A stretch of DNA of 64,000 bases from Auanema rhodensis (GCA_964057225.1 OZ059895.1:17670001-17734000), one strand, 5' to 3'. Counted from the stretch's first letter, positions 7,776-57,011 are shown. Numbers and translations: made by a program. Notes: generated from the letters alone by a model not told the origin.

Positions 7776-7838
<63 letters not shown>

Positions 7839-13690: not shown

Positions 13691-14444
13691 TCTGAAATGA
13701 AAATAGCGTCAAGGAGTTATTAATAGGGTTATGGACAGGAAATGAATAAAGAAAACCAAATGTGATACAGCGAGAATTCCCGCAGCCTAAAGGACAATCG
13801 TCTGACTATGCAAAGGTTTCAAGGGGCGGAGAGAAACTCATACCATACTCCACCTCCATCTCTTCTTTCCATTTCAACCTGTTCTCAGTATTGCAATGTT
13901 AAATGGTACGGTAATCAATAGATATTTTTCTTATTATTGTCAAAACTTAAAAGCAACTTCAAAAATTAGTTTTGAAAATAGCAGAAAATGGCTTATTTTT
14001 CTATCTATACACTATATTTTTGACTTTTATTTTACTTCTCAGAAAACACTGCAGCTATCATACTTAACGAATATAGCCATGTTAGATGATAACTGATCAT
14101 AACAAGATGTGAAATATTTATGCAACTTCGTCAAGACTTGTACTTCACCCTATTAGTGTCATGCCGAAGCGAGACGGCCAGAGACAATAGAAGGCACATT
14201 CAACATTACTGAGTCGTTTTTTGCATGACGAACATACCCGATATGGGATACGTTCACGCGCCCTTATAATATTCAAGTTAAAACATTCCTTGAATTCTTC
14301 GGGAATCACTTGCTAGAGCTCTGGTGCCAATCCTCGTGAAACAACGTCAAGGCAGTATTGTGTGAGTCAAGAAGTTGTGAGCTTGACCAGAATGTTTTCT
14401 ACGTGTTGCTTCTCCAAAATATGATCTTCTGAGATGCCAAAACA

Positions 14445-14516
14445 TGCCTCCAGGCGGGATTGAACCACCGACCTTTGGTTTACAAGACCAACGCTCTGCC
14501 ACTGAGCTATAGAGGC
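14445..14516 (-). tRNA. tRNA-Thr(TGT), first of 26 copies
   Basis: Reverse complement GCCTCTATAGCTCAGTGGCAGAGCG TTGGT-CTTGTAA-ACCAA AGGTC GGTGG-TTCAATC-CCGCC TGGAGGCA folds as a cloverleaf, with a T4 terminator. Other copies have left coordinates 15379, 16505, 17439, 18373, 19499, 20625, 22327, 23645, 24771, 25705, 26831, 28149, 29083, 30208, 31910, 33420, 34354, 35479, 37565, 39075, 40009, 46935, 49021, 50296, 51614. Confidence 0.95.
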
Positions 14517-14700
14517 TTATGAACTATACGAAACATATTTTCATACAAGCGCAGCTTGTACGGAAACATGAGGTCTCAAGCTACAGCAAAACTGCATAAT
14601 TTTTTAAGCTAAATCAAGGCCAAAACGAAAATTCAAATTTGCTTCGCGCAGTCGACGCTACTATTACTTTACCAGAAGTCAGAGTTTTTTAAAAATTTAA

Positions 14701-14773
14701 CGACCACGGCAGGATTCGAACCTACAATCTTCTGCTCCGTAGGCAGACGCGTTATCCATGGCGCCACGCGGCC
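14701..14773 (-). tRNA. tRNA-Arg(ACG), first of 25 copies
   Basis: Reverse complement GGCCGCGTGGCGC(C/A)ATGGATAACGCG TCTGC-CTACGGA-GCAGA AGATTGTAGGTTCGAATCCTGCCGTGGTCG, with a T5 terminator. Other copies have left coordinates 15635, 16761, 17695, 18629, 19755, 20881, 22583, 23901, 25027, 25961, 27087, 28405, 29339, 30464, 32166, 33676, 34610, 35735, 37821, 39331, 40265, 47191, 49277, 50552. Confidence 0.95.
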
Positions 14774-15020
14774 ACGTTATTAAGTTTCTTATCGCTATTC
14801 AAGACTTGCAGTCCAAGATACATTCATCTTGCCTGGAGAAAAGATGGGCCGTTTGAATAGGACATAACATTCCATAGGTGAACTGATATTTTCCGAACAG
14901 TGTGCATGATTGTGGCAACACTGTGGATTCATCCACCTGTTCATACAAATGCGTTAATCGATGTTATTCATGATTGCCAGATTCGAATCACGTATTTGGA
15001 GCATTTAAAGCTTTGTACAA

Positions 15021-15092
15021 GCCTTTATAGCTCAGTGGCAGAGCGTCTGTCTCGTAAACAGAAGGTCGACGGTTCAATCCCGTCTGAGGGCA
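15021..15092 (+). tRNA. tRNA-Thr(CGT), first of ~77 copies (192-bp monomer)
   Basis: GCCTTTATAGCTCAGTGGCAGAGCG TCTGT-CTCGTAA-ACAGA AGGTC GACGG-TTCAATC-CCGTC TGA(A/G)GGCA. A and B boxes are intact and a T4-5 terminator follows. Confidence 0.95.
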
Positions 15093-15212
15093 TATTTTAA
15101 TCGTTTTATTAAGTTTTCAAAGGTTGTCTACACCCATAACTGGTACGAGACTATTTTGTTCATGATTGCCAGATTCGAATCACGTATTTGGAGCATTTAA
15201 AGCTTTGTACAA

Positions 15213-15232
15213 GCCTTTATAGCTCAGTGGCA
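15213..15232 (+). pseudogene. 20-nt 5' fragment of tRNA-Thr(CGT) (A box only), present at the end of 23 of 25 units
   Basis: GCCTTTATAGCTCAGTGGCA is fused via ACCT to AACAGACTCTAGATAGATC, with the same junction in each copy. Confidence 0.9.
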
Positions 15233-18200
15233 ACCTAACAGACTCTAGATAGATCTTTTGCGAATCCTCGTGAAACAACGTCAAGGCGGTATTGTGTGAG
15301 TCAAGAAGTTGTGAACTTGACCAGAATGTTTTCTACGTGTTGCTTCTCCAAAATATGATCTTCTGAGATGCCAAAACATGCCTCCAGGCGGGATTGAACC
15401 ACCGACCTTTGGTTTACAAGACCAACGCTCTGTCACTGAGCTATAGAGGCTTATGAACTATACGAAACATATTTTCATACAAGCGCAGCTTGTACGGAAA
15501 CATGAGGTCTCAAGCTAGAGCAAAACTGCATAATTTTTTAAGCTAAATCAAGGCCAAAACGAAAATTCAAATTTGCTTCGCGCAGTCGACGCTACTATTA
15601 CTTTACCAGAAGTCAGAGTTTTTTAAAAATTTAACGACCACGGCAGGATTCGAACCTACAATCTTCTGCTCCGTAGGCAGACGCGTTATCCATTGCGCCA
15701 CGCGGCCACGTTATTAAGTTTCTTATCGCTATTCAAGACTTGCAGTCCAAGATACATTTATCTTGCCTGGAGAAAAGATGGGCCGTTTGAATAGGACATA
15801 ACATTCCATAGGTGAACTGATATTTTCCGAACAGTGTGCATGATTGTGGCAACACTGTGGATTCATCCACCTGTTCATACAAATGCGTTAATCGATGTTA
15901 TTCATGATTGCCAGATTCGATACACATATTTGGAGCATTTAAAGCTTTGTACAAGCCTTTATAGCTCAGTGGCAGAGCGTCTGTCTCGTAAACAGAAGGT
16001 CGACGGTTCAATCCCGTCTGAAGGCATGTTTTTATCGTTTTATTAAGTTTTCAAAGGTTGTCTACACCCATAACTGGTACGAGACTATTTTGTTCATGAT
16101 TGCCAGATTCGAATCATGTATTTGGAGCATTTAAAGCTTTGTACAAGCCTTTATAGCTCAGTGGCAGAGCGTCTGTCTCGTAAACAGAAGGTCGACGGTT
16201 CAATCCCGTCTGAAGGCATGTTTTTATAGTTTTATTAAGTTTTCAAAGGTTGTCTACACCCATAACTGGTACGAGACTATTTTGTTCATGATTGCCAGAT
16301 TCGAATCACGTATTTGGAGCATTCAAAGCTTTGTACAAGCCTTTATAGCTCAGTGGCAACCTAACAGACTCTAGATAGATCTTTTGCGAATCCTCGTGAA
16401 GCAACGTCAAGGCGGTATTGTGTGAGTCAAGAAGTTGTGAACTTGACCAGAATGTTTTCTACGTGTTGCTTCTCCAAAATATGATCTTCTGAGATGCCAA
16501 AACATGCCTCCAGGCGGGATTGAACCACCGACCTTTGGTTTACAAGACCAACGCTCTGCCACTGAGCTATAGAGGCTTATGAACTATACGAAACATATTT
16601 TCATACAAGCGCAGCTTGTACGGAAACATGAGGTCTCAAGCTAGAGCAAAACTGCATAATTTTTTAAGCTAAATCAAGGCCAAAACGAAAATTCAAATTT
16701 GCTTCGCGCAGTCGACGCTACTATTACTTTACCAGAAGTCAGAGTTTTTTAAAAAGTTAACGACCACGGCAGGATTCGAACCTACAATCTTCTGCTCCGT
16801 AGGCAGACGCGTTATCCATTGCGCCACGCGGCCACGTTATTAAGTTTCTTGTCGCTATTCAAGACTTGCAGTCCAAGATACATTCATCTTGCCTGGAGAA
16901 AAGATGGGCCGTTTGAATAGGACATAACATTCCATAGGTGAACTGATATTTTCCGAACAGTGTGCATGATTGTGGCAACACTGTGGATTCATCCACCTGT
17001 TCATACAAATGCGTTAATCGATGTTATTCATGATTGCCAGATTCGAATCACGTATTTGGAGCATTTAAAGCTTTGTACAAGCCTTTATAGCTCAGTGGCA
17101 GAGCGTCTGTCTCGTAAACAGAAGGTCGACGGTTCAATCCCGTCTGAAGGCATGTTTTTATAGTTTTATTAAGTTTTCAAAGGTTGTCTACACCCATAAC
17201 TGGTACGAGACTATTTTGTTCATGATTGCCAGATTCGAATCACGTATTTGGAGCATTCAAAGCTTTGTACAAGCCTTTATAGCTCAGTGGCAACCTAACA
17301 GACTCTAGATAGATCTTTTGCGAATCCTCGTGAAGCAACGTCAAGGCGGTATTGTGTGAGTCAAGAAGTTGTGAACTTGACCAGAATGTTTTCTACGTGT
17401 TGCTTCTCCAAAATATGATCTTCTGAGATGCCAAAACATGCCTCCAGGCGGGATTGAACCACCGACCTTTGGTTTACAAGACCAACGCTCTGCCACTGAG
17501 CTATAGAGGCTTATGAACTATACGAAACATATTTTCATACAAGCGCAGCTTGTACGGAAACATGAGGTCTCAAGCTAAAGCAAAACTGCATAATTTTTTA
17601 AGCTAAATCAAGGCCAAAACGAAAATTCAAATTTGCTTCGCGCAGTCGACGCTACTATTACTTTACCAGAAGTCAGAGTTTTTTAAAAAGTTAACGACCA
17701 CGGCAGGATTCGAACCTACAATCTTCTGCTCCGTAGGCAGACGCGTTATCCATTGCGCCACGCGGCCACGTTATTAAGTTTCTTGTCGCTATTCAAGACT
17801 TGCAGTCCAAGATACATTCATCTTGCCTGGAGAAAAGATGGGCCGTTTGAATAGGACATAACATTCCATAGGTGAACTGATATTTTCCGAACAGTGTGCA
17901 TGATTGTGGCAACACTGTGGATTCATCCACCTGTTCATACAAATGCGTTAATCGATGTTATTCATGATTGCCAGATTCGAATCACGTATTTGGAGCATTT
18001 AAAGCTTTGTACAAGCCTTTATAGCTCAGTGGCAGAGCGTCTGTCTCGTAAACAGAAGGTCGACGGTTCAATCCCGTCTGAAGGCATGTTTTTATAGTTT
18101 TATTAAGTTTTCAAAGGTTGTCTACACCCATAACTGGTACGAGACTATTTTGTTCATGATTGCCAGATTCGAATCACGTATTTGGAGCATTCAAAGCTTT

Positions 18201-21200
18201 GTACAAGCCTTTATAGCTCAGTGGCAACCTAACAGACTCTAGATAGATCTTTTGCGAATCCTCGTGAAGCAACGTCAAGGCGGTATTGTGTGAGTCAAGA
18301 AGTTGTGAACTTGACCAGAATGTTTTCTACGTGTTGCTTCTCCAAAATATGATCTTCTGAGATGCCAAAACATGCCTCCAGGCGGGATTGAACCACCGAC
18401 CTTTGGTTTACAAGACCAACGCTCTGCCACTGAGCTATAGAGGCTTATGAACTATACGAAACATATTTTCATACAAGCGCAGCTTGTACGGAAACATGAG
18501 GTCTCAAGCTAGAGCAAAACTGCATAATTTTTTAAGCTAAATCAAGGCCAAAACGAAAATTCAAATTTGCTTCGCGCAGTCGACGCTACTATTACTTTAC
18601 CAGAAGTCAGAGTTTTTTAAAAATTTAACGACCACGGCAGGATTCGAACCTACAATCTTCTGCTCCGTAGGCAGACGCGTTATCCATTGCGCCACGCGGC
18701 CACGTTATTAAGTTTCTTATCGCTATTCAAGACTTGCAGTCCAAGATACATTTATCTTGCCTGGAGAAAAGATGGGCCGTTTGAATAGGACATAACATTC
18801 CATAGGTGAACTGATATTTTCCGAACAGTGTGCATGATTGTGGCAACACTGTGGATTCATCCACCTGTTCATACAAATGCGTTAATCGATGTTATTCATG
18901 ATTGCCAGATTCGATACACATATTTGGAGCATTTAAAGCTTTGTACAAGCCTTTATAGCTCAGTGACAGAGCGTCTGTCTCGTAAACAGAAGGTCGACGG
19001 TTCAATCCCGTCTGAAGGCATGTTTTTATCGTTTTATTAAGTTTTCAAAGGTTGTCTACACCCATAACTGGTACGAGACTATTTTGTTCATGATTGCCAG
19101 ATTCGAATCACGTATTTGGAGCATTTAAAGCTTTGTACAAGCCTTTATAGCTCAGTGGCAGAGCGTCTGTCTCGTAAACAGAAGGTCGACGGTTCAATCC
19201 CGTCTGAAGGCATGTTTTTATAGTTTTATTAAGTTTTCATAAGTTGTCTACACCCAAAAAAGGTACGAGACTATTTTGTTCATGATTGCCAGATTTGAAT
19301 CACGTATTTGGAGCATTCAAAGCTTTGTACAAGCCTTTATAGCTCAGTGGCAACCTAACAGACTCTAGATAGATCTTTTGCGAATCCTCGTGAAGCAACG
19401 TCAAGGCGGTATTGTGTGAGTCAAGAAGTTGTGAACTTGACCAGAATGTTTTCTACGTGTTGCTTCTCCAAAATATGATCTTCTGAGATGCCAAAACATG
19501 CCTCCAGGCGGGATTGAACCACCGACCTTTGGTTTACAAGACCAACGCTCTGCCACTGAGCTATAGAGGCTTATGAACTATACGAAACATATTTTCATAC
19601 AAGCGCAGCTTGTACGGAAACATGAGGTCTCAAGCTAGAGCAAAACTGCATAATTTTTTAAGCTAAATCAAGGCCAAAACGAAAATTCAAATTTGCTTCG
19701 CGCAGTCGACGCTACTATTACTTTACCAGAAGTCAGAGTTTTTTAAAAATTTAACGACCACGGCAGGATTCGAACCTACAATCTTCTGCTCCGTAGGCAG
19801 ACGCGTTATCCATTGCGCCACGCGGCCACGTTATTAGGTTTCTTATCGCTATTCAAGACTTGCAGTCCAAGATACATTCATCTTGCCTGGAGAAAAGATG
19901 GGCCGTATGAATAGGACATAACATTCCATAGGTGAACTGATATTTTCCGAACAGTGTGCATGATTGTGGCAACACTGTGGATTCATCCACCTGTTCATAC
20001 AAATGCGTTAATCGATGTTATTCATGATTGCCAGATTCGAATCACATATTTGGAGCATTTAAAGCTTTGTACAAGCCTTTATAGCTCAGTGGCAGAGCGT
20101 CTGTCTCGTAAACAGAAGGTCGACGGTTCAATCCCGTCTGAAGGCATGTTTTTATCGTTTTATTAAGTTTTCATAAGTTGTCTACACCCAAAAAAGGTAC
20201 GAGACTATTTTGTTCATGATTGCCAGATTCGAATCACGTATTTGGAGCATTTAAAGCTTTGTACAAGCCTTTATAGCTCAGTGGCAGAGCGTCTGTCTCG
20301 TAAACAGAAGGTCGACGGTTCAATCCCGTCTGAAGGCATGTTTTTATAGTTTTATTAAGTTTTCATAAGTTGTCTACACCCAAAAAAGGTACGAGACTAT
20401 TTTGTTCATGATTGCCAGATTTGAATCACGTATTTGGAGCATTCAAAGCTTTGTACAAGCCTTTATAGCTCAGTGGCAACCTAACAGACTCTAGATAGAT
20501 CTTTTGCGAATCCTCGTGAAGCAACGTCAAGGCGGTATTGTGTGAGTCAAGAAGTTGTGAACTTGACCAGAATGTTTTCTACGTGTTGCTTCTCCAAAAT
20601 ATGATCTTCTGAGATGCCAAAACATGCCTCCAGGCGGGATTGAACCACCGACCTTTGGTTTACAAGACCAACGCTCTGCCACTGAGCTATAGAGGCTTAT
20701 GAACTATACGAAACATATTTTCATACAAGCGCAGCTTGTACGGAAACATGAGGTCTCAAGCTAAAGCAAAACTGCATAATTTTTTAAGCTAAATCAAGGC
20801 CAAAACGAAAATTCAAATTTGCTTCGCGCAGTCGACGCTACTATTACTTTACCAGAAGTCAGAGTTTTTTAAAAAGTTAACGACCACGGCAGGATTCGAA
20901 CCTACAATCTTCTGCTCCGTAGGCAGACGCGTTATCCATTGCGCCACGCGGCCACGTTATTAAGTTTCTTGTCGCTATTCAAGACTTGCAGTCCAAGATA
21001 CATTCATCTTGCCTGGAGAAAAGATGGGCCGTTTGAATAGGACATAACATTCCATAGGTGAACTGATATTTTCCGAACAGTGTGCATGATTGTGGCAACA
21101 CTGTGGATTCATCCACCTGTTCATACAAATGCGTTAATCGATGTTATTCATGATTGCCAGATTCGAATCACGTATTTGGAGCATTTAAAGCTTTGTACAA

Positions 21201-24200
21201 GCCTTTATAGCTCAGTGGCAGAGCGTCTGTCTCGTAAACAGAAGGTCGACGGTTCAATCCCGTCTGAAGGCATGTTTTTATCGTTTTATTAAGTTTTCAT
21301 AAGTTGTCTACACCCATAAAAAGTACGAGCCTATTTTGTTCATGATTGCCAGATTCGAATCACGTATTTGGAGCATTTAAAGCTTTGTACAAGCCTTTAT
21401 AGCTCAGTGGCAGAGCGTCTGTCTCGTAAACAGAAGGTCGACGGTTCAATCCCGTCTGAAGGCATGTTTTTATCGTTTTATTAAGTTTTCATAAGTTGTC
21501 TACACCCATAAAAGGTACGAGACTATTTTGTTCATGATTGCCAGATTCGAATCACGTATTTGGAGCATTTAAAGCTTTGTACAAGCCTTTATAGCTCAGT
21601 GGCAGAGCGTCTGTCTCGTAAACAGAAGGTCGACGGTTCAATCCCGTCTGAAGGCATGTTTTTATAGTTTTATTAAGTTTTCATAAGTTGTCTACACCCA
21701 AAAAAGGTACGAGACTATTTTGTTCATAATTGCCAGATTCGAATCACGTATTTGGAGCATTTAAAGCTTTGTACAAGCCTTTATAGCTCAGTGGCAGAGC
21801 GTCTGTCTCGTAAACAGAAGGTCGACGGTTCAGTCCCGTCTGAAGGCATGTTTTTATCGTTTTATTAAGTTTTCAAAGGTTGTCTACACCCATAACTGGT
21901 ACGAGACTATTTTGTTCATGATTGCCAGATTCGAATCACGTATTTGGAGCATTAAAAGCTTTGTACAAGCCTTTATAGCTCAGTGGCAGAGCGTCTGTCT
22001 CGTAAACAGAAGGTCGACGGTTCAATCCCGTCTGAAGGCATGTTTTTATAGTTTTATTAAGTTTTCATAAGTTGTCTACACCCAAAAAAGGTACGAGACT
22101 ATTTTGTTCATGATTGCCAGATTTGAATCACGTATTTGGAGCATTCAAAGCTTTGTACAAGCCTTTATAGCTCAGTGGCAACCTAACAGACTCTAGATAG
22201 ATCTTTTGCGAATCCTCGTGAAGCAACGTCAAGGCGGTATTGTGTGAGTCAAGAAGTTGTGAACTTGACCAGAATGTTTTCTACGTGTTGCTTCTCCAAA
22301 ATATGATCTTCTGAGATGCCAAAACATGCCTCCAGGCGGGATTGAACCACCGACCTTTGGTTTACAAGACCAACGCTCTGCCACTGAGCTATAGAGGCTT
22401 ATGAACTATACGAAACATATTTTCATACAAGCGCAGCTTGTACGGAAACATGAGGTCTCAAGCTAGAGCAAAACTGCATAATTTTTTAAGCTAAATCAAG
22501 GCCAAAACGAAAATTCAAATTTGCTTCGCGCAGTCGACGCTACTATTACTTTACCAGAAGTCAGAGTTTTTTAAAAATTTAACGACCACGGCAGGATTCG
22601 AACCTACAATCTTCTGCTCCGTAGGCAGACGCGTTATCCATTGCGCCACGCGGCCACGTTATTAAGTTTCTTATCGCTATTCAAGACTTGCAGTCCAACA
22701 TACATTCATCTTGCCTGGAGAAAAGATGGGCCGTTTGAATAGGACATAACATTCCATAGGTGAACTGATATTTTCCGAACAGTGTGCATGATTGTGGCAA
22801 CACTGTGGATTCATCCACCTGTTCATACAAATGCGTTAATCGATGTTATTCATGATTGCCAGATTCGAATCACATATTTGGAGCATTTAAAGCTTTGTAC
22901 AAGCCTTTATAGCTCAGTGGCAGAGCGTCTGTCTCGTAAACAGAAGGTCGACGGTTCAATCCCGTCTGAAGGCATGTTTTTATCGTTTTATTAAGTTTTC
23001 AAAGGTTGTCTACACCCATAACTGGTACGAGACTATTTTGTTCATGATTGCCAGATTCGAATCACGTATTTGGAGCATTTAAAGCTTTGTACAAGCCTTT
23101 ATAGCTCAGTGGCAGAGCGTCTGTCTCGTAAACAATAGGTCGACGGTTCAATCCCGTCTGAAGGCATGTTTTTATCGTTTTATTAAGTTTTCATAAGTTG
23201 TCTACACCCATAAAAGGTACGAGACTATTTTGTTCATGATTGCCAGATTCGAATCACGTATTTGGAGCATTTAAAGCTTTGTACAAGCCTTCATAGCTCA
23301 GTGGCAGAGCGTCTGTCTCGTAAACAGAAGGTCGACGGTTCAATCCCGTCTGAAGGCATGTTTTTATAGTTTTATTAAGTTTTCAAAGGTTGTCTACACC
23401 CATAACTGGTACGAGACTATTTTGTTCATGATTGCCAGATTCGAATCACGTATTTGGAGCATTCAAAGCTTTGTACAAGCCTTTATAGCTCAGTGGCAAC
23501 CTAACAGACTCTAGATAGATCTTTTGCGAATCCTCGTGAAACAACGTCAAGGCGGTATTGTGTGAGTCAAGAAGTTGTGAACTTGACCAGAATGTTTTCT
23601 ACGTGTTGCTTCTCCAAAATATGATCTTCTGAGATGCCAAAACATGCCTCCAGGCGGGATTGAACCACCGACCTTTGGTTTACAAGACCAACGCTCTGCC
23701 ACTGAGCTATAGAGGCTTATGAACTATACGAAACATATTTTCATACAAGCGCAGCTTGTACGGAAACATGAGGTCTCAAGCTAGAGCAAAACTGCATAAT
23801 TTTTAAAGCTAAATCAAGGCCAAAACGAAAATTCAAATTTGCTTCGCGCAGTCGACGCTACTATTACTTTACCAGAAGTCAGAGTTTTTTAAAAATTTAA
23901 CGACCACGGCAGGATTCGAACCTACAATCTTCTGCTCCGTAGGCAGACGCGTTATCCATTGCGCCACGCGGCCACGTTATTAAGTTTCTTATCGCTATTC
24001 AAGACTTGCAGTCCAAGATACATTTATCTTGCCTGGAGAAAAGATGGGCCGTTTGAATAGGACATAACATTCCATAGGTGAACTGATATTTTCCGAACAG
24101 TGTGCATGATTGTGGCAACACTGTGGATTCATCCACCTGTTCATACAAATGCGTTAATCGATGTTATTCATGATTGCCAGATTCGATACACATATTTGGA

Positions 24201-30200: not shown

Positions 30201-33200
30201 CAAAACATGCCTCAAGGCGGGATTGAACCACCGACCTTTGGTTTACAAGACCAACGCTCTGCCACTGAGCTATAGAGGCTTATGAACTATACGAAACATA
30301 TTTTCATACAAGCGCAGCTTGTACGGAAACATGAGGTCTCAAGCTAGAGCAAAACTGCATAATTTTTTAAGCTAAATCAAGGCCAAAACGAAAATTCAAA
30401 TTTGCTTCGCGCAGTCGACGCTACTATTACTTTACCAGAAGTCAGAGTTTTTTAAAAATTTAACGACCACGGCAGGATTCGAACCTACAATCTTCTGCTC
30501 CGTAGGCAGACGCGTTATCCATTGCGCCACGCGGCCACGTTATTAAGTTTCTTATCGCTATTCAAGACTTGCAGTCCAAGATACATTTATCTTGCCTGGA
30601 GAAAAGATGGGCCGTTTGAATAGGACATAACATTCCATAGGTGAACTGATATTTTCCGAACAGTGTGCATGATTGTGGCAACACTGTGGATTCATCCACC
30701 TGTTCATACAAATGCGTTAATCGATGTTATTCATGATTGCCAGATTCGATACACATATTTGGAGCATTTAAAGCTTTGTACAAGCCTTTATAGCTCAGTG
30801 GCAGAGCGTCTGTCTCGTAAACAGAAGGTCGACGGTTCAATCCCGTCTGAAGGCATGTTTTTATCGTTTTATTAAGTTTTCAAAGGTTGTCTACACCTAT
30901 AACTGGTACGAGACTATTTTGTTCATGATTGCCAGATTCGAATCACGTATTTGGAGCATTTAAAGCTTTGTACAAGCCTTTATAGCTCAGTGGCAGAGCG
31001 TCTGTCTCGTAAACAGAAGGTCGACGGTTCAATCCCGTCTGAAGGCATGTTTTTATAGTTTTATTAAGTTTTCATAAGTTGTCTACACCCAAAAAAGGTA
31101 CGAGACTATTTTGTTCATGATTGCCAGATTTGAATCACGTATTTGGAGCATTCAAAGCTTTGTACAAGCCTTTATAGCTCAGTGGCAGAGCGTCTGTCTC
31201 GTAAACAGAAGGTCGACGGTTCAATCCCGTCTGAAGGCATGTTTTTATCGTTTTATTAAGTTTTCATAAGTTGTCTACACCCATAAAAAGTACGAGCCTA
31301 TTTTGTTCATGATTGCCAGATTCGAATCACGTATTTGGAGCATTTAAAGCTTTGTACAAGCCTTTATAGCTCAGTGGCAGAGCGTCTGTCTCGTAAACAG
31401 AAGGTCGACGGTTCAGTCCCGTCTGAAGGCATGTTTTTATCGTTTTATTAAGTTTTCAAAGGTTGTCTACACCCATAACTGGTACGAGACTATTTTGTTC
31501 ATGATTGCCAGATTCGAATCACGTATTTGGAGCATTAAAAGCTTTCTACAAGCCTTTATAGCTCAGTGGCAGAGCGTCTGTCTCGTAAACAGAAGGTCGA
31601 CGGTTCAATCCCGTCTGAAGGCATGTTTTTATAGTTTTATTAAGTTTTCATAAGTTGTCTACACCCAAAAAAGGTACGAGACTATTTTGTTCATGATTGC
31701 CAGATTTGAATCACGTATTTGGAGCATTCAAAGCTTTGTACAAGCCTTTATAGCTCAGTGGCAACCTAACAGACTCTAGATAGATCTTTTGCGAATCCTC
31801 GTGAAGCAACGTCAAGGCGGTATTGTGTGAGTCAAGAAGTTGTGAACTTGACCAGAATGTTTTCTACGTGTTGCTTCTCCAAAATATGATCTTCTGAGAT
31901 GCCAAAACATGCCTCCAGGCGGGATTGAACCACCGACCTTTGGTTTACAAGACCAACGCTCTGCCACTGAGCTATAGAGGCTTATGAACTATACGAAACA
32001 TATTTTCATACAAGCGCAGCTTGTACGGAAACATGAGGTCTCAAGCTAGAGCAAAACTGCATAATTTTTTAAGCTAAATCAAGGCCAAAACGAAAATTCA
32101 AATTTGCTTCGCGCAGTCGACGCTACTATTACTTTACCAGAAGTCAGAGTTTTTTAAAAATTTAACGACCACGGCAGGATTCGAACCTACAATCTTCTGC
32201 TCCGTAGGCAGACGCGTTATCCATTGCGCCACGCGGCCACGTTATTAAGTTTCTTATCGCTATTCAAGACTTGCAGTCCAACATACATTCATCTTGCCTG
32301 GAGAAAAGATGGGCCGTTTGAATAGGACATAACATTCCATAGGTGAACTGATATTTTCCGAACAGTGTGCATGATTGTGGCAACACTGTGGATTCATCCA
32401 CCTGTTCATACAAATGCGTTAATCGATGTTATTCATGATTGCCAGATTCGAATCACATATTTGGAGCATTTAAAGCTTTGTACAAGCCTTTATAGCTCAG
32501 TGGCAGAGCGTCTGTATCGTAAACAGAAGGTCGACGGTTCAATCCCGTCTGAAGGCATGTTTTTATCGTTTTATTAAGTTTTCAAAGGTTGTCTACACCC
32601 ATAACTGGTACGAGACTATTTTGTTCATGATTGCCAGATTCGAATCACGTATTTGGAGCATTTAAAGCTTTGTACAAGCCTTCATAGCTCAGTGGCAGAG
32701 CGTCTGTCTCGTAAACAGAAGGTCGACGGTTCAATCCCGTCTGAAGGCATGTTTTTATCGTTTTATTAAGTTTTCATAAGTTGTCTACACCCATAAAAGG
32801 TACGAGACTATTTTGTTCATGATTGCCAGATTCGAATCACGTATTTGGAGCATTTAAAGCTTTGTACAAGCCTTTATAGCTCAGTGGCAGAGCGTCTGTC
32901 TCGTAAACAGAAGGTCGACGGTTCAATCCCGTCTGAAGGCATGTTTTTATCGTTTTATTAAGTTTTCATAAGTTATCTACACCCAAAAAAGGTACGAGAC
33001 TATTTTGTTCATGATTGCCAGATTCGAATCACGTATTTGGAGCATTTAAAGCTTTGTACAAGCCTTTATAGCTCAGTGGCAGAGCGTCTGTCTCGTAAAC
33101 AATAGGTCGACGGTTCAATCCCGTCTGAAGGCATGTTTTTATCGTTTTATTAAGTTTTCATAAGTTGTCTACACCCATAAAAGGTAGGGGACTATTTTGT

Positions 33201-36200
33201 TCATGATTGCCAGATTCGAATCACGTATTTGGAGCAATTAAAGCTTTGTACAAGCCTTTATAGCTCAGTGGCAACCTAACAGACTCTAGATAGATCTTTT
33301 GCCAATGCTCGTGAAACAACGTCAAGGCGGTACTGTGTGGGTCAAGAAGTTGTGAACTTGACCAGAATGTTTTCTACGTGTTGCTTCTCCAAAATATGAT
33401 CTTCTGAGATGCCAAAACATGCCTCCAGGCGGGATTGAACCACCGACCTTTGGTTTACAAGACCAACGCTCTGCCACTGAGCTATAGAGGCTTATGAACT
33501 ATACGAAACATATTTTCATACAAGCGCAGCTTGTACGGAAACATGAGGTCTCAAGCTAGAGCAAAACTGCATAATTTTTTAAGCTAAATCAAGGCCAAAA
33601 AGGAAATTCAAATTTGCTTCGCGCAGTCGACGCTACTATTACTTTACCAGAAGTCAGAGTTTTTTAAAAATTTAACGACCACGGCAGGATTCGAACCTAC
33701 AATCTTCTGCTCCGTAGGCAGACGCGTTATCCATTGCGCCACGCGGCCACGTTATTAAGTTTCTTATCGCTATTCAAGACTGGCAGTCCAAGATACATTC
33801 ATCTTGCCTAGAGAAAAGATGGGCCGTTTGAATAGGACATAACATTCCATAGGTGAACTGATATTTTCCGAACAGTGTGCATGATTGTGGCAACACTGTG
33901 GATTCATCCACCTGTTCATACAAATGCGTTAATCGATGTTATTCATGATTGCCAGATTCGAATCACATATTTGGAGCATTTAAAGCTTTGTACAAGCCTT
34001 TATAGCTCAGTGGCAGAGCGTCTGTCTCGTAAACAGAAGGTCGACGGTTCAATCCCGTCTGAAGGCATGTTTTTATCGTTTTATTAAGTTTTCAAAGGTT
34101 GTCTACACCCATAACTGGTACGAGACTATTTTGTTCATGATTGCCAGATTCGAATCATGTATTTGGAGCATTTAAAGCTTTCTACAAGCCTTTATAGCTC
34201 AGTGGCAACCTAACAGACTCTAGATAGATCTTTTGCGAATCCTCGTGAAGCAACGTCAAGGCGGTATTGTGTGAGTCAAGAAGTTGTGAACTTGACCAGA
34301 ATGTTTTCTACGTGTTGCTTCTCCAAAATATGATCTTCTGAGATGCCAAAACATGCCTCCAGGCGGGATTGAACCACCGACCTTTGGTTTACAAGACCAA
34401 CGCTCTGCCACTGAGCTATAGAGGCTTATGAACTATACGAAACATATTTTCATACAAGCGCAGCTTGTACGGAAACATGAGGTCTCAAGCTAGAGCAAAA
34501 CTGCATAATTTTTAAAGCTAAATCAAGGCCAAAACGAAAATTCAAATTTGCTTCGCGCAGTCGACGCTACTATTACTTTACCAGAAGTCAGAGTTTTTAA
34601 AAAATTTAACGACCACGGCAGGATTCGAACCTACAATCTTCTGCTCCGTAGGCAGACGCGTTATCCATTGCGCCACGCGGCCACGTTATTAAGTTTCTTA
34701 TCGCTATTCAAGACTTGCAGTCCAAGATACATTTATCTTGCCTGGAGAAAAGATGGGCCGTTTGAATAGGACATAACATTCCATAGGTGAACTGATATTT
34801 TCCGAACAGTGTGCATGATTGTGGCAACACTGTGGATTCATCCACCTCTCATACAAATGCGTTAATCGATGTTATTCATGATTGCCAGATTCGATACACA
34901 TATTTGGAGCATTTAAAGCTTTGTACAAGCCTTTATAGCTCAGTGGCAGAGCGTCTGTCTCGTAAACAGAAGGTCGACGGTTCAATCCCGTCTGAAGGCA
35001 AGTTTTTATCGTTTTATTAAGTTTTCAAAGGTTGTCTACACCCATAACTGGTACGAGACTATTTTGTTCATGATTGCCAGATTCGAATCACGTATTTGGA
35101 GCATTTAAAGCTTTGTACAAGCCTTTATAGCTCAGTGGCAAAGCGTCTGTCTCGTAAACAGAAGGTCGACGGTTCAATCCCGTCTGAAGGCATGTTTTTA
35201 TAGTTTCATTAAGTTTTCATAAGTTGTCTACACCCAAAAAAGGTACGAGACTATTTTGTTCATGATTGCCAGATTTGAATCACGTATTTGGAGCATTCAA
35301 AGCTTTGTACAAGCCTTTATAGCTCAGTGGCAACCTAACAGACTCTAGATAGATCTTTTGCGAATCCTCGTGAAGCAACGTCAAGGCGGTATTGTGTGAG
35401 TCAAGAAGTTGTGAACTTGACCAGAATGTTTTCTACGTGTTGCTTCTCCAAAATATGATCTTCTGAGATGCCAAAACATGCCTCAAGGCGGGATTGAACC
35501 ACCGACCTTTGGTTTACAAGACCAACGCTCTGCCACTGAGCTATAGAGGCTTATGAACTATACGAAACATATTTTCATACAAGCGCAGCTTGTACGGAAA
35601 CATGAGGTCTCAAGCTAGAGCAAAACTGCATAATTTTTTAAGCTAAATCAAGGCCAAAACGAAAATTCAAATTTGCTTCGCGCAGTCGACGCTACTATTA
35701 CTTTACCAGAAGTCAGAGTTTTTTAAAAATTTAACGACCACGGCAGGATTCGAACCTACAATCTTCTGCTCCGTAGGCAGACGCGTTATCCATTGCGCCA
35801 CGCGGCCACGTTATTAAGTTTCTTATCGCTATTCAAGACTTGCAGTCCAAGATACATTTATCTTGCCTGGAGAAAAGATGGGCCGTTTGAATAGGACATA
35901 ACATTCCATAGGTGAACTGATATTTTCCGAACAGTGTGCATGATTGTGGCAACACTGTGGATTCATCCACCTGTTCATACAAATGCGTTAATCGATGTTA
36001 TTCATGATTGCCAGATTCGATACACATATTTGGAGCATTTAAAGCTTTGTACAAGCCTTTATAGCTCAGTGGCAGAGCGTCTGTCTCGTAAACAGAAGGT
36101 CGACGGTTCAATCCCGTCTGAAGGCATGTTTTTATCGTTTTATTAAGTTTTCAAAGGTTGTCTACACCTATAACTGGTACGAGACTATTTTGTTCATGAT

Positions 36201-42384: not shown

Positions 42385-42543
42385 TGTTTTTATCGTTTTA
42401 TTAAGTTTTCATAAGTTGTCTACACCCAAAAAAGGTACGAGACTATTTTGTTCATGATTGCCAGATTCGAATCACGTATTTGGAGCATTTAAAGCTTTGT
42501 ACAAGCCTTTATAGCTCAGTGGCAGAGCGTCTGTCTCGTAAAC

Positions 42544-42888
42544 CGTTCCATTCGGACTCCCCATATATGTAGCTGAAGGGTTAGAGCCAGACCACCAGAG
42601 GACCGAGGAATGGCTCCGCCTTCCCTCGTTCCCTTGGTCGGGAGTTCGCCTCTTAGCAAGCTCATGGACGGCTTGTAGTTTAGTCTTTATACTTATATTT
42701 ATCTTATTGTATTGTATCTTTATCTTTGTATATTATTGTTGTAGTTTCATGCCAATAAATCTTTCTCTCTTTTATCTTATGATTGACCTTATGCTCTTTA
42801 TTCCTTACCGCTACACCAAGGAATACTATGCGCGTCATAGTATAAACTACAATGGTTTATATTATCGACGCAGGAGCGTAACGGAACG
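42544..42888 (+). repeat. 5' LTR
   Basis: Direct repeat of 45734-46078. AATAAA at 42754-42759. Internal inverted pair TTGTAGTTTA (42673) / TAAACTACAA (42843). Confidence 0.93.
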
Positions 42889-42901
42889 TGGAGGTTCCAC
42901 C
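42889..42901 (+). promoter_or_regulatory. Primer binding site complementary to the tRNA-Gln 3' end
   Basis: TGGAGGTTCCACC abuts the 5' LTR and is the reverse complement of ...GGUGGAACCU-CCA, the eukaryotic tRNA-Gln acceptor end as recalled. Confidence 0.8.
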
Positions 42902-43874: not shown

Positions 43875-44389
43875 TCAAAATCCCCACTTGAAAGCTAGCT
43901 GTCTCTCAAACTCTGCAACAAGAGAGATAGGCTCGTAACTGGGGGTGAGGTATTCGGGATACTCTCTCCCCAGTGAGGCCCTCAGCTGCAATCCAAGCGA
44001 AGAGCTATCATAACATACATAAATTTTAAACAAAATTTTACATTATAATTCATAGAATAAAGGCTGCCTCTCGGTATACCATCTCCAGGGACTTCCTACA
44101 AGTCCACACGGGAGAGCGGCATAAGAATGCGCGCAGAGGTCACGGAGGCAGAGACGCCCTACGAGCTCAATCTCGGGCGCAATTTCCGCCATAGCGGAAA
44201 AATTAACGAGGCCCCTGCCCAAATAGAACATTTGCAGATCCTCAATAAACTAAAATAGCAAAAGAAAATACTGAAATTGACTAATGCACCAACCATTAAT
44301 ACTATATCAGGATGGGGCCTATAAGCCAATCTCTCTTCAGCATCATAAAAGACAATAACGTCATACAGCTTTTGCATGACAAAGGTCAT
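43875..44389 (-). CDS. Putative spliced antisense cargo gene inside the LTR element, unknown product
   Basis: GC-richer blocks separated by short GT..AG segments that join in frame (…HPDIVLM|FIEDLQMFYLGRG…). A stop at 43875-43877 is followed at once by AATAAA (43866-43871). The exon model is ambiguous. Confidence 0.35.
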
Positions 44390-45722
44390 TCCAGTAGGCT
44401 AGACGCTCATTTTTATGAATTCTTAGCTCTCAAAAATAATAAAATCTAGCTTGGTAAACAAGAGAAAAAATTGGGACAAAAACATGATTGAAAGCTACTA
44501 GTGAAGAGAGAAATTAAAGGAAGTACAAGCGGAAAGTGCAAGAGCGGATAAAAATAGTTTTTGAGAAAAGATAAACACCATTAACTATAATAAGCTTACG
44601 GTAGATAGGCGGAGTCAGATTGTTGGCCAAAATTTGGAAAACTCCCTCTCATTTACCCTCCGCATCGCCCAGCGAAGCACGAAAATCCTATTGCTCCCGA
44701 ATCTTTCTCTCTCCCAACACACATCTAAAAGAATCTTACGCACCTTACGTCAACATCCCACACGTAGCTCACCATTCTCGGGTTTTCCAAACCAAGAGTC
44801 CTATAAAGGTGGAAAAAAGATTCTCATCGGCTTTCCGAGCCCTTTACCCGTCCGATACCAACAGTGACGCTACTGTCGCAAGTCGTCGCAGAAGCCGTAC
44901 CCGACTTCTTAGTGTTCAAATAGAAAAACCGCACCAACCAGCCGAGAAGCCGAAGTCGCAAGTCGACCAGTTTTATACTCCCCGAGAAGGAACATATTCA
45001 CCTTCTGACGACACCTACGAAGATCCGGACTTCATCATAGCCGACGACAGAAAAATTTTTTATATACATTCTTTTCTTTTCTGTAGATTGTAAAATGAAA
45101 GTAACGGTGAATTAGAAAAATTTTGATGAGAGATTAAGAGAATAAACAACCAAAAATAAGGAATAAGTGAAAATATAATATAAATAATAGGCTACCGTAC
45201 TTCTTTACGATGATAGAGATAGTCTATCGCACTAAATTGAGCTCCATATGTATCTCCAAGAAGAGACGAAAATTGGCAGGCGCCTAAGCCACACCCCATC
45301 TGAGTGGTAGCCTCCATTAGTACTCAAGGATTCATTCAGAGAGACACATGAAGACGAAAACAATTAATAACTAAAAATCTTTATCCCCATCATCATTAGG
45401 ATACGAGTAACCATGCACGCAAAAAGTTGAATAATTCCTTATTATCTCACATAAATCTCAAATTCATGGAACAATTTTTTTTTATTACAGTACTACAATG
45501 ACTAAATTTATTTTTCTAATCCTCCGTTACAAAATAACATAAAACCCATTATTGTATTCAAATTCTATCTTAATACCATAAAGAAACCTATTAAAACTAT
45601 TTATATATCTTTCTACATGTAGATTTTAAAACTTTTAAATTTATTTGTAAACTCCTAGACTCTAAAACTCAGCTACATATACACTAAAAACTCTTTATAT
45701 CGCGCGGACGCGAAAAATCTTT

Positions 45723-45731
45723 GAAAAAGGG
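45723..45731 (+). promoter_or_regulatory. Polypurine tract
   Basis: GAAAAAGGG followed by CA immediately before the 3' LTR. Confidence 0.7.
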
Positions 45732-45733
45732 CA

Positions 45734-46078
45734 CGTTCCATTCGGACTCCCCATATATGTAGCTGAAGGGTTAGAGCCAGACCACCAGAGGACCGAGGAA
45801 TGGCTCCGCCTTCCCTCGTTCCCTTGGTCGGGAGTTCGCCTCTTAGCAAGCTCATGGACGGCTTGTAGTTTAGTCTTTATACTTATATTTATCTTATTGT
45901 ATTGTATCTTTATCTTTGTATATTATTGTTGTAGTTTCATGCCAATAAATCTTTCTCTCTTTTATCTTATGATTGACCTTATGCTCTTTATTCCTTACCG
46001 CTACACCAAGGAATACTATGCGCGTCATAGTATAAACTACAATGGTTTATATTATCGACGCAGGAGCATAACGGAACG
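45734..46078 (+). repeat. 3' LTR
   Basis: Identical to the 5' LTR except GAGCATA versus GAGCGTA near its end. Confidence 0.93.
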
Positions 46079-46594
46079 AAACAGAAGGTCGACGTTTCAA
46101 TCCCGTCTGAAGGCATGTTTTTATCGTTTTATTAAGTTTTCATAAGTTGTCTACACCCAAAAAAAGTACGAGACTATTTTGTTCATGATTGCCAGATTCG
46201 AATCACGTATTTGGAGCATTTAAAGCTTTGTACAAGCCTTTATAGCTCAGTGGCAGAGCGTCTGTCTCGTAAACAGAAGGTCGACGGTTCAATCCCGTCT
46301 GAAGGCATGTTTTTATCGTTTTATTAAGTTTTCATAAGTTGTCTACACCCAAAAAAGGTACGAGACTATTTTGTTCATGATTGCCAGATTCGAATCACGT
46401 ATTTGGAGCATTTAAAGCTTTGTACAAGCCTTTATAGCTCAGTGGCAGAGCGTCTGTCTCGTAAACAGAAGGTCGACGGTTCAATCCCGTCTGAAGGCAT
46501 GTTTTTATCGTTTTTTTAAGTTTTCAAAGGTTGTCTACACCCATAAAAGGTACGAGAAACAGTTGATGAATGATTTCTTACAAGTATGACTATT

Positions 46595-46755
46595 CAACTT
46601 ACCTGTCCGGAGGCACACCCTGATCAAAAAGGTGGTATCCCCACCGCCATGCCAGATCGTCGTAGTTGATTCAGCAGTGATCTGTATAATACTTTTAAGT
46701 TGAAGTTAGCAAAAGGTAGACTTTTAAGTTCTTCGATGCGCGTAGTTGTAATATT
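46595..46755 (+). pseudogene. U1 snRNA-like sequence (decayed or divergent), copy 1
   Basis: AACTTACCTG, then 16 nt, then GATCAAAAAGGTGGTATCCCCA (U1-70K loop region). Colinear weaker similarity continues through TGATCTGT and AGTTGA to a degenerate Sm-site position (46720). The U1A loop and Sm site are degenerate. Confidence 0.6.
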
Positions 46756-49700
46756 GTAATTGTCAGTGGTCTCTTATGCTTCTAAAAAGGGGAACAGACT
46801 ATAGATAGATCTTTTGCCAATGCTCGTGAAACAACGTCAAGGCGGTACTGTGTGGGTCAAGAAGTTGTGAACTTGACCAGAATGTTTTCTACGTGTTGCT
46901 TCTCCAAAATATGATCTTCTGAGATGCCAAAACATGCCTCCAGGCGGGATTGAACCACCGACCTTTGGTTTACAAGAAAAACGCTCTGCCACTGAGCTAT
47001 AGAGGCTTATGAACTATACGAAACATATTTTCATACAAGCGCAGCTTGTACGGAAACATGAGGTCTCAAGCTAGAGCAAAACTGCATAATATTTTAAGCT
47101 AAATCAAGGCCAAAACGAAAATTCAAATTTGCTTCGCGCAGTCGACGCTACTATTACTTTACCAGAAGTCAGAGTTTTTTAAAAATTTAACGACCACGGC
47201 AGGATTCGAACCTACAATCTTCTGCTCCGTAGGCAGACGCGTTATCCATTGCGCCACGCGGCCACGTTATTAAGTTTCTTATCGCTATTCAAGACTTGCA
47301 GTCCAAGATACATTCATCTTGCCTGGAGAAAAGATGGGCCGTTTGAATAGGACATAACATTCCATAGGAGAACTGATATTTTCCGAACAGTGTGCATGAT
47401 TGTGGCAACACTGTGGATTCATCCACCTGTTCATACAAATGCGTTAATCGATGTTATTCATGATTGCCAGATTCGAATCACATATTTGGAGCATTTAAAG
47501 CTTTGTACAAGCCTTTATAGCTCAGTGGCAGAGCGTCTGTCTCGTAAACAGAAGGTCGACGGTTCAATCCCGTCTGAAGGCATGTTTTTATCGTTTTATT
47601 AAGTTTTCATAAGTTGTCTACACCCAAAAAAGGTACGAGACTATTTTGTTCATGATTGCCAGATTCGAATCACGTATTTGGAGCATTTAAAGCTTTGTAC
47701 AAGCCTTTATAGCTCAGTGGCAGAGCGTCTGTCTCGTAAACAGAAGGTCGACGGTTCAATCCCGTCTGAAGGCATGTTTTTATCGTTTTATTAAGTTTTC
47801 ATAAGTTGTCTACACCCAAAAAAGGTACGAGACTATTTTGTTCATGATTGCCAGATTCGAATCACATATTTGGAGCATTTAAAGCTTTGTACAAGCCTTT
47901 ATAGCTCAGTGGCAGAGCGTCTGTCTCGTAAACAGAAGGTCGACGGTTCAATCCCGTCTGAAGGCATGTTTTTATCGTTTTATTAAGTTTTCATAAGTTG
48001 TCTACAACCAAAAAAGGTACGAGACTATTTTGTTCATGATTGCCAGATTCGAATCACGTATTTGGAGCATTTAAAGCTTTGTACAAGCCTTTATAGCTCA
48101 GTGGCAGAGCGTCTGTCTCGTAAACAGAAGGTCGACGGTTCAATCCCGTCTGAAGGCATGTTTTTATCGTTTTATTAAGTTTTCATAAGTTGTCTACACC
48201 CAAAAAAGGTACGAGACTATTTTGTTCATGATTGCCAGATTCGAATCACGTATTTGGAGCATTTAAAGCTTTGTACAAGCCTTTATAGCTCAGTGGCAGA
48301 GCGTCTGTCTCGTAAACAGAAGGTCGACGTTTCAATCCCGTCTGAAGGCATGTTTTTATCGTTTTATTAAGTTTTCATAAGTTGTCTACACCCAAAAAAG
48401 GTACGAGACTATTTTGTTCATGATTGCCAGATTCGAATCACGTATTTGGAGCATTTAAAGCTTTGTACAAGCCTTTATAGCTCAGTGGCAGAGCGTCTGT
48501 CTCGTAAACAGAAGGTCGACGGTTCAATCCCGTCTGAAGGCATGTTTTTATCGTTTTATTAAGTTTTCATAAGTTGTCTACAACCAAAAAAGGTACGAGA
48601 CTATTTTGTTCATGATTGCCAGATTCGAATCACGTATTTGGAGCATTTAAAGCTTTGTACAAGCCTTTATAGCTCAGTGGCAGAGCGTCTGTCTCGTAAA
48701 CAGAAGGTCGACGGTTCAATCCCGTCTGAAGGCATGTTTTTATCGTTTTATTAAGTTTTCATAAGTTGTCTACACCCAAAAAAGGTACGAGACTATTTTG
48801 TTCATGATTGCCAGATTCGAATCACGTATTTGGAGCATTTAAAGCTTTGTACAAGCCTTTATAGCTCAGTGGCAACCTAACAGACTCTAGATAGATCTTT
48901 TGCGAATCCTCGTGAAACAACATCAAGGCGGTATTGTGTGAGTCAAGAAGTTGTGAACTTGACCAGAATGTTTTCTACGTGTTGCTTCTCCAAAATATGA
49001 TCTTCTGAGATGCCAAAACATGCCTCCAGGCGGGATTGAACCACCGACCTTTGGTTTACAAGACCAACGCTCTGCCACTGAGCTATAGAGGCTTATGAAC
49101 TATACGAAACATATTTTCATACAAGCGCAGCTTGTACGGAAACATGAGGTCTCAAGCTAGAGCAAAACTGCATAATATTTTAAGCTAAATCAAGGCCAAA
49201 ACGAAAATTCAAATTTGCTTCGCGCAGTCGACGCTACTATTACTTTACCAGAAGTCAGAGTTTTTTAAAAATTTAACGACCACGGCAGGATTCGAACCTA
49301 CAATCTTCTGCTCCGTAGGCAGACGCGTTATCCATTGCGCCACGCGGCCACGTTATTAAGTTTCTTATCGCTATTCAAGACTTGCAGTCCAAGATACATT
49401 CATCTTGCCTGGAGAAAAGATGGGCCGTTTGAATAGGACATAACATTCCATAGGAGAACTGATATTTTCCGAACAGTGTGCATGATTGTGGCAACACTGT
49501 GGATTCATCCACCTGTTCATACAAATGCGTTAATCGATGTTATTCATGATTGCCAGATTCGAATCACATATTTGGAGCATTTAAAGCTTTGTACAAGCCT
49601 TTATAGCTCAGTGGCAGAGCGTCTGTCTCGTAAACAGAAGGTCGACGTTTCAATCCCGTCTGAAGGCATGTTTTTATCGTTTTATTAAGTTTTCATAAGT

Positions 49701-49955
49701 TGTCTACACCCAAAAAAGGTACGAGACTATTTTGTTCATGATTGCCAGATTCGAATCACGTATTTGGAGCATTTAAAGCTTTGTACAAGCCTTTATAGCT
49801 CAGTGGCAGAGCGTCTGTCTCGTAAACAGAAGGTCGACGGTTCAATCCCGTCTGAAGGCAGTTTTTCATGGTTTTTTTAAGTTTTCATAAGTTGTCTACA
49901 CCCATAAAAGGTACGAGAAACAGTTGATGAATGATTTCTTACAAGTATGACTATT

Positions 49956-50116
49956 CAACTCACCTGTCCGGAGGCACACCCTGATCAAAAAGGTGGTATC
50001 CCCACCGCCATGCCAGATCGTCGTAGTTGATTCAGCAGTGATCTGTATAATACCTTTAAGTTGAAGTTAGCAAAAGGTAGACTTTTGAGTTCTTCGATGC
50101 GTGTAGTTGTAATATT
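49956..50116 (+). pseudogene. U1 snRNA-like sequence, copy 2
   Basis: Near-identical to copy 1. The 5' motif reads AACTCACCTG and the Sm position reads GACTTTTGAG. Confidence 0.55.
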
Positions 50117-51613
50117 GTAATTGTCAGTGGTCTCTTATGCTTCTAAAAAGGGGAACAGAATCTAGATAGATCTTTTGCGAATCTTCGTGAAACAACGTCA
50201 AGGCGGTATTGTGTGAGTCAAGAAGTTGTGAACTTGACCAGAATGTTTTCTACGTGTTGCTTCTCCAAAATATGATCTTCTGAGATGCCAAAACATGCCT
50301 CCAGGCGGGATTGAACCACCGACCTTTGGTTTACAAGACCAACGCTCTGCCACTGAGCTATAGAGGCTTATGAACTATACGAAACATATTTTCATACAAG
50401 CGCAGCTTGTACGGAAACATGAGGTCTCAAGCTAGAGCAAAACTGCATAATATTTTAAGCTAAATCAAGGCCAAAACGAAAATTCAAATTTGCTTCGCGC
50501 AGTCGACGCTACTATTACTTTACCAGAAGTCAGAGTTTTTTAAAAATTTAACGACCACGGCAGGATTCGAACCTACAATCTTCTGCTCCGTAGGCAGACG
50601 CGTTATCCATTGCGCCACGCGGCCACGTTATTAAGTTTCTTATCGCTATTCAAGACTTGCAGTCCAAGATACATTCATCTTGCCTGGAGAAAAGATGGGC
50701 CGTTTGAATAGGACATAACATTCCATAGGAGAACTGATATTTTCCGAACAGTGTGCATGATTGTGGCAACACTGTGGATTCATCCACCTGTTCATACAAA
50801 TGCGTTAATCGATGTTATTCATGATTGCCAGATTCGAATCACATATTTGGAGCATTTAAAGCTTTGTACAAGCCTTTATAGCTCAGTGGCAGAGCGTCTG
50901 TCTCGTAAACAGAAGGTCGACGGTTCAATCCCGTCTGAAGGCATGTTTTTATCGTTTTATTAAGTTTTCATAAGTTGTCTACACCCAAAAAAGGTACGAG
51001 ACTATTTTGTTCATGATTGCCAGATTCGAATCACGTATTTGGAGCATTTAAAGCTTTGTACAAGCCTTTATAGCTCAGTGGCAGAGCGTCTGTCTCGTAA
51101 ACAGAAGGTCGACGGTTCAATCCCGTCTGAAGGCATGTTTTTATCGTTTTATTAAGTTTTCATAAGTTGTCTACACCCAAAAAAGGTACGAGACTATTTT
51201 GTTCATGATTGCCAGATTTGAATCACGTATTTGGAGCATTTAAAGCTTTGTACAAGCCTTTATAGCTCAGTGGCAGAGCGTCTGTCTCGTAAACAGAAGG
51301 TCGACGGTTCAATCCCGTCTGAAGGCATGTTTTTATCGTTTTATTAAGTTTTCATAAGTTGTCTACACCCAAAAAAGGTACGAGACTATTTTATTTATGA
51401 TTGCCAGATTCGAATCACGTATTTGGAGCATTTAAAGCTTTGTAAAAGCCTTTATAGCTCAGTGGCAACCTAACAGACTATAGATAGATCTTTTGCCAAT
51501 CCTCTTGAAACAACGTCAAGGCAGTATTGTGTGAGTCAAGAAGTTGTGAGCTTAACCAGAATGTTTTCTACGTGTTGCTTCTCCAAAATATGATTTTCTG
51601 AGATGCCAAAACA

Positions 51614-51686
51614 TGCCTCCAGGCGGGATTGAACCACCGACCTTTGGTTTACAAGACCAACGCTCTGCTCACTGAGCTATAGAGGC
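51614..51686 (-). tRNA. Terminal tRNA-Thr(TGT) of the array, with a 1-nt D-loop insertion (possible pseudogene)
   Basis: Reads CAGTGAGCAGAG instead of CAGTGGCAGAG. Array homology stops at its 5' end. Confidence 0.8.
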
Positions 51687-56973: not shown

Positions 56974-56980
56974 TATATAA
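56974..56980 (+). promoter_or_regulatory. TATA box of collagen copy 1 (copy 2 at 58661)
   Basis: TATATAA ending 32 nt upstream of the ATG, typical of non-trans-spliced cuticle collagen genes. Confidence 0.7.
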
Positions 56981-57011
56981 GTGCCGTAAGCAGGTCGAAT
57001 AGCAAGCAGCA

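Follow-up and report, generated by a model that had tools for sequence, protein, structure and literature searches.

Why a nematode should carry a 37-kb tandem array of tRNA genes between a Wnt gene and a chemoreceptor-like gene is the question raised by this locus of Auanema rhodensis (GCA_964057225.1, OZ059895.1:17670001-17734000; hereafter the window, the whole stretch of 64,000 nucleotides that was analysed, from whose first letter positions are counted). As judged from the assembled DNA, the array is real and its layout is a variant of known tRNA arrays, and its use as a chromatin device is only hypothetical. Our best reading, which we consider probable, is that a small cluster of Pol III genes has undergone a young, lineage-specific and near-neutral amplification in tandem.

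First, we describe the composition of the array (Table 1). Between positions 14445 and 51686, both ARAGORN and Rfam identify 127 full-length tRNA genes, with Rfam scores of 52-73 bits against a cut-off of 29. These comprise 76 Thr-CGT genes on the plus strand as well as 26 Thr-TGT and 25 Arg-ACG genes on the minus strand. Each unit is laid out, 5' to 3', as Thr-TGT (-), Arg-ACG (-) and then 1-13 Thr-CGT monomers (+). An extra Thr-CGT copy beyond the 127 is split by an LTR element of 3535 bp. The 128th gene called by ARAGORN itself, a lone Thr-AGT at 62233, is unrelated and lies outside the array, and the gene that it calls Tyr at 46935 is a mutated Thr-TGT, mis-called because of two substitutions in the anticodon stem. 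The majority sequence is present in 54 Thr-CGT, 21 Thr-TGT and 24 Arg-ACG copies, and five further Thr-CGT copies have harmless acceptor-stem changes only; by this measure (majority sequence or harmless stem change) 104 of the 127 genes look intact. Cloverleaf folds were obtained for the majority sequences, and a run of four or five T residues lies within a few bases downstream of most gene copies. Altogether, tRNA sequence makes up 25% of the array, or 27% if the LTR insertion is excluded.

The 522-bp core of the unit has a mean identity of 99.2% among units and the 192-bp monomers, which number 1-13 per unit, one of 97.2%. Decomposition into units indicates that monomers are gained and lost independently of the unit, the copy-number variation being that among units of a single haplotype. 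The array thus consists of head-to-tail units with mostly intact genes and turnover by unequal exchange, as befits a tandem tRNA gene array. A sequence-only reading of the window had counted about 128 tRNA genes, most of them with cloverleaf, A and B boxes and oligo-T terminator, and had described a variable-number tandem repeat (VNTR) of a tRNA gene nested in a tRNA array. These descriptive points are borne out, the count as 127 full-length genes plus the one split Thr-CGT copy, the integrity by the 104 intact genes and the T4-T5 runs at most copies, and the nesting by the unit decomposition.

Table 1. Coordinates of the features discussed, counted from the first letter of the window.
Feature	Start	End	Strand	Remarks
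lin-44 orthologue (Wnt gene), left flank	10934	13564	-	syntenic with A. melissensis
Whole tandem array	14325	51686	.	25 units plus terminal Thr-TGT; 127 full-length tRNA genes
Minimal 934-bp unit, first copy	14445	15378	.	
tRNA-Thr(TGT), first of 26	14445	14516	-	21/26 identical; T4 terminator
tRNA-Arg(ACG), first of 25	14701	14773	-	24/25 identical; T5 terminator
19-nt 5' half of Thr-CGT	15213	15231	+	A box, no B box; at deletion junction
192-bp monomer	15901	16092	+	tRNA-Thr(CGT) at 15955-16026
Recently duplicated multi-unit blocks	28070	34847	.	copies 5271 and 5655 bp downstream; ~99.5% over 3.6-3.9 kb
Non-autonomous LTR element, 3535 bp	42544	46078	+	inserted just 3' of Thr-CGT anticodon
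U1 snRNA-like, long unit 1	46595	46752	+	Rfam 21.4 bits, below 69.5 cut-off
U1-like copy 2, long unit 2	49956	50113	+	extra change in 5' splice-site-pairing arm
Terminal Thr-TGT, right array edge	51614	51686	-	1-nt D-arm insertion
Srh-like chemoreceptor exons, right flank	52182	53086	-	weak Pfam match

The junctions within the units point to how the nesting arose. In the two units at the right end, a spacer of 435 bp follows the last Thr-CGT gene, giving a minimal unit of 1083 bp, and this long spacer contains a decayed U1-like sequence. Its first copy keeps the 5' splice-site arm and stem-loop I, and the U1A loop and the Sm site are degenerate. A functional U1 snRNA gene in the long units was considered and rejected on account of the Rfam score (21.4 against 69.5 bits) and the altered 5' arm of the second copy. 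The 23 short units each terminate in a 19-nt 5' half of the Thr-CGT gene, and four filler bases link this half to the distal end of the long spacer; the 934-bp unit therefore ends in a half-gene and is devoid of the U1 relic. The 3' part of the monomer first matches the start of the long spacer and from there switches to sequence of the Thr-CGT upstream flank. TATTCA occurs at both parental sites of this monomer junction, which likewise carries a short deletion and filler bases.

The simplest order of events would lead from the long unit through an internal duplication and a deletion to the spread of the products. An ancestral long unit of 1083 bp would have held Thr-TGT, Arg-ACG and Thr-CGT together with the decayed U1 sequence. 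Internal duplication would have created the monomer, whose length of 192 bp is set by the duplication breakpoints, and a deletion would have created the 934-bp unit with its half-gene; TATTCA and the short filler bases suggest microhomology or end-joining at the junctions. Two monomers, once present, allow misalignment at either period, and unequal exchange between any two monomers may have been the engine of the nesting. Strings of SNPs show such events. By its SNP haplotypes, the unit at 30208 equals the unit at 35479 minus two internal monomers, and the units at 22327 and 26831 as well as those at 31910 and 37565 form matched pairs. Furthermore, blocks of 2.7-3.9 kb are repeated with ~99.5% identity at offsets of 4504, 5271, 5655 and 7332 bp, and the four rightmost units form a sub-array carrying its own variants.

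The insertion of the LTR element, by which one gene was disrupted, is recent. The two LTRs of 345 bp differ at one of 345 sites, indicating a young insertion, and the element has a 4-bp target duplication (AAAC), CG...CG ends and a primer-binding site that ends in TGG and that we take to resemble the 3' end of tRNA-Gln. Its longest ORF has no Pfam match, and no coding region is recognisable. Each LTR contains a 29-bp imperfect palindrome (42602-42630 and 45792-45820) with a GGC-TCC-GCC centre and 10 of 13 arm pairs, a geometry equal to that of the Oscheius/Auanema elimination motif. As elimination signals, these palindromes were rejected for their GC-rich arms, for GAGG in place of the AGGT of Oscheius and for the lack of a pattern match; going by the motif, they are probably not a break site.

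Next, we consider whether the genes bear a trace of selection. Variable sites amount to 15 of 217 in the genes and 54 of 615 in the spacers, which is not a significant difference (p 0.47). Variants above a frequency of 8-10% number 0 in the genes and 22 in the spacers (Fisher p 0.003; rank test p 0.013; circular shift within the monomer p 0.036), and these p values are only indicative because variants are non-independent, being shared by descent through duplication, and the cut-off was picked after inspection of the data. Rare variants per site are 0.069 in genes and 0.055 in spacers. Likely damaging changes are found in 17 of 76 Thr-CGT copies, and most rare Thr-CGT changes fall on conserved A-box, B-box or stem positions (G15, G19, G22, C32, the anticodon stem, G53 and A58 in standard numbering). 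Since common variants avoid the genes and rare ones do not, the genes seem to have been conserved over the older history of the array, and new damage is not visibly purged. We infer that the genes were under purifying selection, or homogenised, while they were few, and the surplus copies would be nearly neutral. The pattern is consistent with near-neutral expansion after selection had acted on a few ancestral copies, or with weak selection at the level of the array. Low gene diversity is just as well compatible with continuing weak selection, which counts against the near-neutral reading.

Both flanks are unique, ordinary gene-rich DNA without a repeat border, and their GC content of ~26-36% is in keeping with that of the earlier A. 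rhodensis assembly (32.2%). A short GC-richer stretch with small hairpins lies just left of the array (14140-14325), and the left flank gave no Rfam match. On the right, a cuticle collagen gene has undergone a recent tandem duplication (56499-59874; 1688 bp, 99.4% identical); the A. melissensis assembly has one collagen copy, interrupted by a small gap. The lone tRNA-Thr(AGT) gene (62233-62304) stands 10.5 kb beyond the array and has G for T at D-loop position 16; counting it, the region holds three Thr isoacceptors.

At the array locus as in A. melissensis (Auanema sp. JU1783), the genes run Abhydrolase, Branch, Branch, lin-44, collagen, and among the relatives tested the latter has the most similar lin-44 (75% against 50-70% in other nematodes; spliced flank genes were compared exon by exon). 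Where the A. melissensis interval is assembled, it has no counterpart of the Srh-like gene. That orthologous interval of 6.6 kb has a tRNA-Glu(CTC) gene directly beside a gap of 4623 N (3933-8646 of the compared stretch), and neither Thr nor Arg nor U1 was matched in its assembled part. An array of another isotype could lie concealed in the gap, in which case the position would be conserved. With 3945 gaps in the 59.7 Mb of this short-read assembly, however, the gap beside tRNA-Glu is weak evidence. Within 10 kb of lin-44, neither a Thr nor an Arg tRNA gene was found in Diploscapter, Mesorhabditis, C. angaria, Ancylostoma or Dictyocaulus, which says little because synteny is not kept there. 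ARAGORN called a tRNA-Ser(GGA) just upstream of the Dictyocaulus lin-44 model (9573-9645 of the compared stretch), with an anticodon unusual in eukaryotes; it is probably a tRNA-derived repeat. A 25-mer from the monomer spacer had no match in metagenomes.

Tandem tRNA arrays are known from distant organisms. The tRNA-STR arrays of Entamoeba comprise several isotypes on both strands with variable spacers, and a structural role has been proposed for them. Their variable element is a short non-coding repeat and they are thought to cap chromosome ends, whereas in Auanema it is an entire tRNA gene that varies in number, within an interstitial array. In the Ser-Tyr-Tyr cluster of Arabidopsis, the internal copy number is fixed at two. 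This cluster is the closest in layout, as it too has a multi-isotype unit with one gene internally duplicated and cis-elements that are conserved in the clustered copies (PMC7544208, PMC12308677). It is silenced by DNA methylation (PMC7544208). The inner gene of the Auanema array varies between 1 and 13 copies. In proposed role, the tRNA VNTR at human 1q23.3 is the closest, being a multi-tRNA unit of variable copy number and a proposed boundary (PMC4041453). The human unit measures 7.3 kb, is GC-rich with <6% tRNA and has a CTCF site and a position conserved in mouse (PMC4041453), compared with a unit of 0.9 kb in Auanema. What sets the locus apart from the known arrays is an inner variable repeat that amounts to a complete tRNA gene. 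A limited literature search found no publication describing such a layout and nothing relevant on tRNA arrays in nematodes.

Within the genus, tRNA arrays are common. The text of a preprint on A. rhodense gives 19,554 tRNA genes and reports, in outline, tandem tRNA arrays among the eliminated repeats (10.64898/2026.08.27.747507), so the contrast with the mostly dispersed tRNA genes of C. elegans drawn in the sequence-only reading misleads and does not make the locus unique. By the account in that text, the Auanema genome is reported to amplify tRNA genes at many loci, of which this array is one. The arrays outlined there come from the same genus and probably from the same assembly, but they lie in eliminated DNA with an RNA-gene density of <20% per 10 kb, whereas the present one lies between conserved genes, has 25-27% tRNA and is built of nested units. 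The text of the preprint, its tables aside, does not describe this locus (10.64898/2026.08.27.747507).

Several other accounts of the array have to be weighed against near-neutral amplification. One could suspect an artefact of assembly, which is unlikely in the extreme on the evidence of the assembled sequence. The longest exact repeat is 2.6 kb, and together with the diagnostic SNPs of the units this makes the array resolvable by accurate long reads (the source assembly is probably PacBio HiFi); moreover, the SNP patterns are hierarchical, the LTR insertion has its target duplication and the unique flanks are clean. The array might also be a dosage reservoir, its genes being transcribed, perhaps in the germline or oocyte only, and the array being kept for its tRNA output in an rDNA-like manner. 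This is possible, though unlikely. Canonical cloverleaves and terminators favour it, as does the avoidance of the genes by common variants, and the text of the preprint has only 215 of the 19,554 A. rhodense tRNA loci called as pseudogenes (10.64898/2026.08.27.747507). In addition, the Arabidopsis Ser/Tyr cluster is reportedly reactivated in root tips (PMC12308677). However, the most amplified gene, Thr-CGT, reads the rarest local Thr codon (ACG, 5 of 50 Thr codons in the flanking exons, a small sample of 1211 codons), which argues against a demand-driven supply and agrees with the earlier view that tRNA supply is an unlikely role. Furthermore, 17 of 76 Thr-CGT genes are likely damaged, to which 23 half-genes and one disrupted copy must be added, and the ~500 tRNA loci of the earlier A. 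rhodensis assembly, a number on the scale of C. elegans, suggest that so many genes are not needed. Very improbable, finally, is that the array forms an island of silenced heterochromatin, or belongs to germline-restricted DNA that is lost through programmed DNA elimination, with exclusion from somatic use as its role. Clustered tRNA genes are silenced in Arabidopsis despite intact promoters (PMC7544208), several A. rhodense tRNA arrays lie within eliminated DNA according to the preprint's text (10.64898/2026.08.27.747507), and the 29-bp imperfect palindromes, one per LTR, are centred on GGC-NNN-GCC. Yet no GGC-N3/4-GCC site and no SFE-like site, by which a germline-restricted repeat would be bounded, was found in the unique flanks, and AGGT-N3-GGC-N3-GCC with at most one mismatch had no match anywhere in the 64-kb window; AGGT at positions 4-7 of the motif matters in Oscheius. 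Conserved single-copy genes stand on both sides of the array, and few protein genes are eliminated in A. rhodense as far as the preprint's text goes. Somatic retention of the array may be inferred from these neighbours and from the lack of a break-site match in flanks and window. Silencing, if present, would be compatible with the amplification reading and would amount to no separate function.

The sequence-only reading had suggested that the array may act as a structural chromatin element. In the form weighed here, the array would be selected as a dense TFIIIC/cohesin/condensin platform or a boundary by lin-44, in which the density of A and B boxes outweighs gene identity, and we regard this as unlikely. 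Intact boxes are kept in 104 of 127 genes, and TFIIIC recruits cohesin and condensin to tRNA genes in C. elegans, where it is required for both and for contacts between tRNA genes (PMC13142402). The human 1q23.3 VNTR is bound by CTCF at a position conserved in mouse (PMC4041453), a tRNA-Glu gene lies beside the gap in the A. melissensis interval, and the monomer has a weak 10-bp periodicity of AA/TT/TA (shuffle p 0.04, one uncorrected test). Against this, mutations in the A and B boxes accumulate at the spacer rate, the flanks are ordinary gene-rich DNA, and the gap is one among thousands in its assembly. [quoted passage not shown] Nor does the monomer match the nucleosome repeat as had been suggested, since 192 bp contrasts with a nucleosome period of 175 nt in C. 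elegans (PMC5054450), its length is set by breakpoints and the periodicity is marginal. The unpurged gene damage, the weak barrier and the length mismatch together tell against the proposed selected role. A bolder version, which we consider improbable, would make the lin-44-collagen interval a conserved Auanema site of tRNA arrays with turnover of isotype (Thr/Arg here, Glu in A. melissensis). Position and density of TFIIIC sites would be selected, and the inner VNTR would tune the strength of a somatic SMC-loading platform, in an animal that is holocentric and eliminates DNA. For an open array, occupancy by TFIIIC, cohesin and condensin is plausible, given that both SMC complexes are recruited to tRNA genes by TFIIIC in C. 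elegans (PMC13142402). Going by that analogy, an accessible array probably binds all three, but such binding would merely follow from accessibility and would be no sign that the role is selected. Under near-neutral amplification, the array would be retained in somatic cells and any binding of TFIIIC or condensin would be a by-product.

The locus does not establish a new class, because tandem tRNA arrays are known and their abundance in A. rhodense has already been reported. Its value lies in a legible record of the origin and turnover of a tRNA array within 37 kb. Ancestral unit, internal duplication, deletion, block duplication and LTR insertion are all present, and SNPs make the copies distinguishable. 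Moreover, since it lies in gene-rich DNA with unique flanks that is probably retained in somatic cells, it is well suited to the question of whether an animal transcribes its surplus tRNA genes, silences them or uses them as a platform for TFIIIC and condensin.
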